Shown here: piece by piece, positions 51,045 to 52,058 of the stretch
Layout: every line of letters begins with the position of its first letter
How positions within the stretch are numbered: position 1 is the first letter of the stretch
Assembly (NCBI RefSeq): GCF_006345805.1
Contig: NC_042998.1
Span: 11,718,001-11,782,000, forward strand
Direction: 5' to 3'
Origin: Octopus sinensis
Lineage: Eukaryota
Length of the DNA stretch: 64,000 nucleotides
Translations under genes and position numbers: made by a program
Notes under the pieces: generated by a model
What the model was told of the DNA's origin: nothing
The model's input: the letters and a program-made list of their open reading frames with translations, nothing else
Database searches by the model: none

Positions 51045-52058
51045 TATTTTTGCTTGTTTCAGCTCAGAGCTGCGGCCATGCTGATGTACCGCCGTTTTGT
51101 GCTACACTGTTATTGCGAAGAACCTCGTCTAATATGTGGCACTTGGTGAAGAATGGAGTTTGACATAGCTACTCTCATTTGCACCTCTTGCAGTGAGGTA
51201 GGTTCATCTGGGACTCTCGACAGGAAGATGTCCAGCTTTGATTTAAAAACTGCTACATCTACTTTCTCCAAGTTCCTCAGACTCTTTGGGAGAATATTAA
51301 AAAGCTGTGGGCCCTTGAAACCCAGGCTGTTGCAGAAGCTGGTCCTGAAGCGTGATGGCATTGCTGGGATCTTTGGCACTATGCAGTGTCGTCCCGTTCT
51401 AGCATTGGTGTAGCTTACAATGCCAAAATTTGGCACAATTCCTTCCAGGATCTTCCAGACATATATTACTGCATACCTCTTCCGTCTTCTCTCCAGGGAG
51501 TACAGTCTTAGCTGTTTCAACCTTTCCCAGTAGCTGAGCTGTTGCAAAGAGACAATCTTCTTTGTGAATCGTCTCTGGATTGCTTCAAGGTCCGCTGTTA
51601 ATTTTACACTGGTGGGTGACCATAGCTGTGAGCAGTAATCCAGGCGGCTGAGGACGAATGTCCGCCAGAGGACCATCATGGTTTCCTTATCTCTGGTTCT
51701 GAATGTTCTTAGGATCCATCCAGCCAGTCGTTTGCACTTTGTCGCCATCCTGGTAATGTGCACTTGGAAAGAGGTATCATCACTCATGTCGATACCCAGG
51801 TCCCTCACAGACTTAGGGTCTGGGATTGAAATTCCCTGTGGACCGGTGTATCCTGTAAGTTTAATATTCAGTTTTGGATGCTGGTAGCGCAGGGCCTAGA
51901 ATTTGTCAGCATTAAACTGCATATTATTATACTCTCCAACTCCTGCTGCAGGTGTGCAACATCGGTGGGGTTCTGTATTTTCTGTGAGACTTTCGTATCG
52001 TCTGCATAGCTTGCCAGAGTGGCTATCCGGGCATTTGAGGGCATATCTGAGAGGGCAT
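51045..52058 (-). mobile_element. 5'-truncated CR1-clade LINE (RT C-terminus plus 3' UTR)
   Basis: LASYADDTK; MQFNADKF; RDLGIDMS; SRLDYCSQLWSP; LEAIQRRFTK; YWERLKQLRLYSLERRR; ORF 51110-51808 is open. Confidence 0.92.

Follow-up and report, generated by a model that had tools for sequence, protein, structure and literature searches.

A Two-Hairpin 3' Tail Shared by an Octopus SINE and the LINE Lineage That May Copy It

Introduction

The borrowing of a LINE tail by a SINE has been a textbook principle since the 1990s. SINE/LINE pairs with common tails are known mostly from the CR1 and RTE clades; in “stringent” LINEs the reverse transcriptase (RT) recognizes a 3' stem-loop and primes on the terminal repeats, and SINEs with the same tail are mobilized in trans (PMC3747384). 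The “stringent” pair proven by experiment is that of the eel (L2 clade), in which UnaL2 mobilizes UnaSINE1 through the common tail, the stem being required and the tail repeats taking part in priming (PMC3747384).

The pair described here, SINE B and a LINE, lies in a 64,000-nucleotide stretch of Octopus sinensis DNA (the window). As in the eel pair, SINE and LINE have a conserved 3' region in common, with a stem-loop and with short tandem repeats at its end (PMC3747384). The octopus pair differs from UnaL2 in having two adjacent hairpins, a conserved G.G internal loop and repeats of 8 rather than 5 nt. Nor is there a match to UnaL2 in sequence or structure: Rfam, which we take to include the UnaL2 3' element, gives no match at E ≤ 10 on 51000–51160, none at the gathering threshold in the whole window and none on the SINE.

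The 3' UTR of amniote CR1 contains a conserved hairpin and an octamer microsatellite (PMC4316615). With the family of the window LINE it shares the short 3' UTR, the hairpin immediately before an 8-nt tandem repeat, the extreme 5' truncation and a proposed RT recognition site (PMC4316615), whereas the octopus element has another repeat unit (TAAAAGAR and variants, by direct reading), another hairpin sequence and two hairpins. Among mollusks, the CORE, V, Deu and Meta SINEs of bivalves have CR1, CR1-Zenon, L2 and Nimb LINEs as partners (PMC11481361; PMC4824008; PMC4758252), and their tails match the LINE 3' ends over 35–61 bp at 72–95% identity (PMC11481361). SINE B and its LINE are likewise a molluscan pair, and their 52 nt at 81% fall within the bivalve range; the bivalve heads are tRNA-related. 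The octopus pair belongs to a different molluscan class, and the bivalve studies report sequence homology, not conserved secondary structure.

SINEs are the largest repeat class in Octopus genomes, where “tRNA-Core” SINEs dominate the repeats, and the octopus SINEs have been reported as tRNA-Core and tRNA-Deu, without a class based on the LINE tail (PMC8967140). The octopus elements OR1 and OR2 are listed as CORE-SINEs (Ohshima and Okada, 1994, as cited in PMC4824008 and PMC4758252). SINE B, which has a head with A and B boxes and, behind it, a CORE-like stretch, may be akin to these elements. A 2013 table of SINE/LINE pairs contains no molluscan pair (PMC3747384), and a search of the literature, with Repbase and Dfam outside it, found no published SINE/LINE pair from octopus. 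Against this background, in which no partner was found in the literature, SINE B and its LINE are a concrete candidate for the enzyme lineage behind the octopus SINE expansion.

It is probable that the 65-nt stretch that follows the LINE coding region is a genuine 3' UTR, that a conserved RNA module makes up its last ~50 nt, and that SINE B acquired this module as its 3' end and would hence be copied in trans by LINEs of the lineage to which the window LINE belongs.

The LINE Copy and Its 3' UTR

The LINE consists of the following parts.

51045–52060, minus strand: LINE copy, 5'-truncated and dead, which runs from the last part of the RT domain through the C-terminal domain to the 3' UTR
51110–51808, minus strand: open C-terminal part of the LINE ORF2, 232 aa, with the stop codon TAA at 51110–51112
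51045–51109, minus strand: LINE 3' UTR, 65 nt, delimited as in an earlier note on this DNA
51074–51093, minus strand: hairpin H1, GGC-G-GUAC-AUCA-GCAU-G-GCC; its internal loop is G.G, and an A.C mismatch interrupts its inner stem
51060–51072, minus strand: hairpin H2, CAGCU-CUG-AGCUG, the hairpin that the earlier note described
51035–51060, minus strand: 3' end, with the GAAAC spacer (51056–51060) and the terminal tail AAGCAAAAATA(TA)n

The copy is ~1 kb long, truncated at its 5' end inside the RT domain, and dead. Coding homology, as traced by tblastn with RT-bearing relatives, covers 51119–51928 and continues in another frame over 51928–52053, with an in-frame TAG and a frameshift near 51900–51930. 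The flanks are (AT)118 at 52061–52290 and a short (TA)n at about 51035–51047. After the TAA the 3' UTR reads CAGTGTAGCACAAAACGGCGGTACATCAGCATGGCCGCAGCTCTGAGCTGAAACAAGCAAAAATA(TA)n on the minus strand, from 51109 down to about 51045, and the ~50-nt module starts 16 nt past the stop codon. BLAST and tblastn found no further copies of this LINE in the 64-kb window.

The 232-aa ORF itself has no Pfam match. It has 567 homologues at E ≤ 1e-5, many of them with RVT_1, and contigs related to the window LINE carry an Exo_endo_phos endonuclease upstream; these two are the only Pfam domains found in the LINE relatives. No relatives of the LINE protein were found among viral contigs in the related-locus search. 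An element of CR1/L2-like type is plausible, one that combines a C-terminal domain with an APE endonuclease and an RT. In this lineage the 3' UTR is short and has a hairpin and, after it, a tandem repeat of ~8 nt; poly(A) is lacking and 5' truncation is severe. All these features also occur in the L2 and Rex1 groups and are not diagnostic of CR1.

The earlier note treated the UTR as belonging to the LINE, a reading opposed to that of a SINE fragment, which other LINE copies would lack. The closest LINE relatives that could be retrieved, L001, L002 and L003, come from ENA metagenome assemblies and share 65–67% amino-acid and about 70% DNA identity with the ORF of the window LINE. All three carry the module 0–50 nt past their own stop codons (L001 reads TAA-GGGCGGTGCTCCAGCATGGCCTCAGCCACTGGCTGAAACGGTTAAAAGAATAAAAGAAT here, and the ends of L002 and L003 are comparable). 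Their stems, loops and tail repeats are unlike those of the SINE, and each of the three has a loop and a tail repeat of its own. Because it stands directly after their own stops, the module is a part of the LINE and not an adjacent SINE fragment. The flank of L003 (664–707) shares an interspersed repeat with the window (93% over 44 nt, six window sites), and L003 therefore comes from a related genome.

The shortness of the UTR (65 nt), the decay of the LINE copy and the presence of tail-only copies nearby, at 53552 and 54982, would also be expected if a SINE fragment or SINE 3' end had inserted beside the LINE ORF by chance, leaving a UTR foreign to the LINE. Such an accident is very improbable in view of three independent relatives, from different samples, that have the module right after their stops with stems, loops and repeats that are not those of the SINE, and of a structurally equivalent module in LINEs at 47–51% identity. 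Moreover, there are about 10 differences between the module of the window LINE and that of each SINE copy, two compensated pairs among them.

SINE B and the Tail-Only Copies

SINE B and its relatives occur in the window as follows.

14875–15280, minus strand: full SINE B copy, with the tail at 14880–14932, an internal (TA/TG)n, the body and an imperfect target-site duplication of ~23 bp
40885–41277, minus strand: SINE B copy that shares 96% identity with the one at 14875, with the tail module at 40885–40937
34383–34897, minus strand: older SINE B copy, interrupted by an internal insertion, with the tail module at 34382–34434
63876–64000, minus strand: SINE B copy truncated by the end of the window, with the tail module at 63876–63928
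48156–48326, minus strand: SINE of a diverged or older subfamily, at 68% identity to SINE B, with GGTAC in the tail as in the window LINE
53552–53616, minus strand: tail-only copy, the third variant of the earlier note, related to the subfamily at 48156 and abutting (ATCT)39
54982–55034, minus strand: tail-only copy absent from the earlier note, with H2 CGGCC/GGCUA, the tail (TTWAGGAT)2 and (TA)n on both sides

SINE B is ~405 bp long and starts with a head that contains A- and B-box motifs, followed by a CORE-like stretch (CTTGGGCAAGT..., CTTGGGCAAGTGTCTT...) that by eye resembles what we take to be the CORE domain, the central ~60 bp of CORE-SINEs. A-box-like and B-box-like motifs at tRNA spacing are present in three heads (15217–15270, 41220–41273 and the head-only copy 17812–17865) and in none of 100 shuffles; neither ARAGORN nor the Rfam tRNA model finds a tRNA in the SINE B head. 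The tail is GGCGGTGCTCCAGCATGGCCGCAGTCAAATGACTGAAACAAGTAAAAGAG at 14880–14932 and 63876–63928, and shows 1–4 substitutions at 40885–40937 and 34382–34434. With a target-site duplication and a varying number of tail repeats, the SINE copies look retroposed.

When SINE B is searched against the window by BLAST, its tail aligns with that of the LINE at 80.8% identity over 52 nt (E = 1.2e-5); the sequences quoted for both in the earlier note are exact, on the minus strand. The similarity begins 2–4 nt upstream of H1 (GGCGG), and the body of SINE B has no match to any LINE ORF. With up to one mismatch, the 11-mer core CAGCATGGCCG occurs six times, always on the minus strand, against 0.27 occurrences expected. 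A covariance model detects eight tail modules in the window, one of them new; the copy at 54982–55034, which came to light through the model alone and was not in its training set, is matched with 35.1 bits (E = 1.2e-7).

All eight tail modules (14880–63928), as well as the SINE heads at 17706–17880 and 59275–59435, lie on the minus strand, a bias that would fit a window situated inside an intron of a plus-strand gene. These two heads consist of the head and the CORE-like half only, at 81–86% identity to SINE B; they end at the internal microsatellite, without the LINE-type tail, and could represent a separate SINE family or breakage at the internal repeat. Three of the eight tail-bearing insertions are in or beside (TA)n, namely the LINE (51035–52290), the copy at 54982 (54912–55131) and the SINE B copy at 34383 (34885–34950), which suggests a preference for TA-repeat targets or priming on TA repeats.

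Two-Hairpin Structure of the Module

According to RNAalifold on ten tails, the module consists of two adjacent hairpins and not one. H1 has the consensus GGC-G-GUGC-UCCA-GCAU-G-GCC, in which a 3-bp outer stem, a G.G 1x1 internal loop and a 4-bp inner stem are closed by an NCCA tetraloop. H2, directly adjoining, is CAGNN-loop-NNCUG, with 5 bp and a variable loop of 3–5 nt, and is followed on its 3' side by a GAAAC spacer, invariant within the close group, and by a small number of tandem 8-nt units. The G.G loop of H1, the NCCA loop, the H2 stem and GAAAC are thereby defined as features of the RNA, and for annotation the tail module permits the matching of SINE and LINE subfamilies and the detection of the tail-only fragments that are strewn through such genomes.

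H2 reads CAGCC/GGCUG in L001–L003, CAGCU/AGCUG in the window LINE and CAGUC/GACUG in all copies of SINE B, so that, relative to L001–L003, the window LINE and the SINE have each altered a different pair on both sides. As a predicted hairpin, H2 is thus supported by compensated changes. The earlier note had proposed that the LINE and SINE stems differ and yet pair, and the two compensated positions bear this out, but the loops of 1–2 nt that it drew are impossible, the actual stems having 5 bp and loops of 3–4 nt. The recognition structure that it put forward was also only half of the module: H2 is upheld by the compensated changes, whereas H1, which lies upstream and is better conserved, had been missed.

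SINE B and L001–L003 fold with z-scores of -2.2 to -3.5. The window LINE reaches z = -1.0, no better than shuffles, because of the A.C mismatch in H1, and the support for its fold is conservation, not folding energy. The two-hairpin fold is not formed by the tails at 53552 and 48156, and in the SINE at 48156–48326 H2 is broken by a 1-nt deletion. The third variant, which the earlier note took to fold as well, does so by G.T pairing on the plus (antisense) strand only; its sense RNA, CAAUC/GACUG, has an A.C mismatch, and RNAfold forms no such hairpin. To judge by its sequence, what lies at 53552–53604 is the decayed tail of a copy of the older SINE subfamily represented at 48156–48326.

In 12 sequences that include the LINEs L032, L033 and L040, 82.6% of the cells are paired, compared with 25–47% when the partners are slid, and 7 of the 13 pairs show changes on both sides. 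By itself, the number of compensated pairs does not reach significance (P = 0.05–0.39); a joint test of compensated and few broken pairs gives P = 0.003–0.016 per comparison in random-substitution simulations, on a tail sample of about a dozen lineages that are related to each other. These figures bear on the possibility that the primary sequence alone counts (CCAGCAUGGCC, GAAAC), with incidental hairpins and compensations that are chance C>T and G>A transitions. All four stem differences are indeed transitions, 5-bp hairpins are common, the z-scores of single sequences are modest and the independent lineages few. Nevertheless, this explanation is distinctly unlikely: L032, L033 and L040 have exchanged most of the H1 and H2 sequence and kept the fold, pairing falls to the values just given in the slid-partner controls, and the two-hairpin shape recurs in distant LINEs, as against about 0.04% of shuffles.

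Conservation in Distant LINEs

L032, L033 and L040 (47–51% identity) have a mostly different tail (ACGGUGUACCCCAGUACAACGUU-GGCAA...UUGCC-UAAAGC) with the same fold. At 44–50% identity, RNAfold places the shape directly before the tail repeats in L034, L038, L039 (Clytia hemisphaerica), L041 (Petrolisthes cinctipes) and L042. In L038, L039, L041 and L042 the module overlaps the last ORF2 codons and the stop codon, and the same bases therefore encode an RNA structure and the C-terminus of a protein. By direct reading, nine lineages have G.G as the 1x1 internal loop of H1, and the L032/L033 family has G.A.

A strict definition of the shape holds for 9 of 11 tails and for 3 of 11,000 dinucleotide shuffles, and, applied unchanged to L041 and L042, which were fetched later, for neither of the two: L041 has a 2x2 internal loop, and in L042 the outer stem has 5 bp and the H2 loop 12 nt. 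A relaxed shape is the minimum-free-energy fold of 11 of 13 sequences (12 LINE tails and SINE B) and of 5 of 13,000 dinucleotide shuffles; both definitions were set after inspection of the data, and the relaxed one is post hoc. A covariance model built from the close group (R1) did not detect the modules of L034, L035, L038 and L039. Therefore, what is claimed for the distant LINEs is a conserved architecture or shape, not homology by score.

A search of the metagenome collection with the tail pattern (CAGCATGRCCNCAGN{6,11}CTGAAAC) gave 28 matches, in contigs of 44–68% G+C with no likeness outside the pattern, which were set aside as chance. Among viral contigs the pattern matches twice.

The mechanism is ordinary; the modestly new element is a module of two hairpins that includes a conserved purine-purine loop and seems to be widespread in this LINE clade. 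A broader reading is possible but tentative. The module, with its purine-purine H1 loop, H2, A-rich NAAAC spacer and repeats of 8–10 nt, might be an ancient RT-recognition element of a whole marine-invertebrate LINE clade, its shape kept across cnidarians, crustaceans and cephalopods and at times overlapping the stop codon, and at the same time the amplification handle of abundant CORE-type SINEs in octopods. If this were true, the driver of the octopus SINE expansion would be a CR1-like LINE and not the RTE elements examined to date.

The spread of the architecture also bears on the direction of the transfer. Template switching between LINE and SINE RNA is known, and SINE copies are far more numerous than LINE copies in the window, so the LINE lineage might have taken its 3' end from the abundant SINE. 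That course of events is hard to credit, since the architecture is present in cnidarian and crustacean LINEs, where it overlaps the stop codons, and since the SINE expansions of octopuses are reported to be lineage-specific (PMC8967140).

The Candidate Partner LINE and the Proposed Mechanism

With the module taken as originating in the LINE, the proposed mechanism is as follows. The LINE RT would bind the two-hairpin module on its own transcript, and would then prime from the terminal repeats at the nicked target, as in target-primed reverse transcription of the “stringent” type, which the anatomy fits. SINE B would have taken over the two-hairpin module as its own 3' end, and its transcripts, presumably made by Pol III, would be recognized in trans and copied by LINEs of the lineage of the window LINE. 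We infer the binding of the protein, the identity of the partner LINE subfamily and trans-mobilization, the last from established SINE/LINE biology.

The earlier note held that the window alone identifies the likely mobilizing lineage. The tail is indeed intrinsic to the LINE lineage, as L001–L003 demonstrate, but copies from outside the window were required to establish this. Judged by the tails, moreover, the window LINE copy is not of the source subfamily of SINE B. H1 of SINE B (GGCGGTGCTCCAGCATGGCC) is identical to that of L001 at 20 of 20 positions and differs from that of the window LINE at 3 of 20. SINE B copies terminate in one or two units of TAAAAGAG, which match the repeat of L001, (TAAAAGAA)2, while the window LINE has CAAAAATA and then a (TA)n that may be target sequence. 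Over the whole tail, the SINE is equally close to L001, from another genome, and to the window LINE. Only the GAAACAAG spacer is specifically common to SINE B and the window LINE. The GGTAC variant of the window LINE recurs in the older SINE subfamily (48156), a hint that the subfamilies of the two elements change in step. Among the LINE tails retrieved, none has the exact CAGTC/GACTG stem of SINE B, with or without its tail unit.

This last result, together with the death of the window LINE and the report of RTE as a full-length transcribed LINE in Octopus (PMC9115989), would agree with a tail that is a relic: SINE B would have taken it from the LINE lineage long ago and now be copied by another LINE, such as RTE, the tail being conserved by descent only. 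A relic is unlikely, because young SINE B copies (96% identical) retain the module intact (z = -3.3), because their repeat agrees with that of L001, and because the stem change specific to the SINE is compensated rather than decayed.

Neighboring Elements in the Window

Several other elements lie near the LINE and the SINEs. A second SINE-like element, at about 48700–49075 (plus strand), has a head that is clearly tRNA-like (GGAGGCGCAATGGCCCAGTGGTTAGGG...GGTTTCGATTCCC), differs at its 3' end, and stands head-to-tail beside the diverged SINE at 48156–48326. Directly upstream of the LINE, at 52330–52640, there are two tandem units of an interspersed repeat (…CTACCCACAAGGGGCTAAACACAGAGG…TCGACCCCAGTG…), which also occurs near 58501, 38033, 29237 and 46692 and is shared at 86–95% with L003 664–707. 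About 80 bp downstream of the LINE 3' end, a foldback element of ~390 bp (50577–50968) contains nested inverted repeats, with 79-nt arms that are 94% complementary and inner arms of 31 nt that are 100% complementary; it is probably a MITE-like DNA element.

A different LINE at 39–848 (plus strand) retains an intact C-terminal ORF of 269 aa, the homologues of which carry zf-RVT (PF13966); the best match has 73% identity, and the best named match, from the octopod Argonauta hians, 59%. Adjoining the tail-only copy at 54982, an ORF at 55362–55745 (plus strand) contains the motif …WQQDSASCHTS…, which we take to be that of a mariner-like transposase, and looks like a decayed Tc1/mariner remnant.
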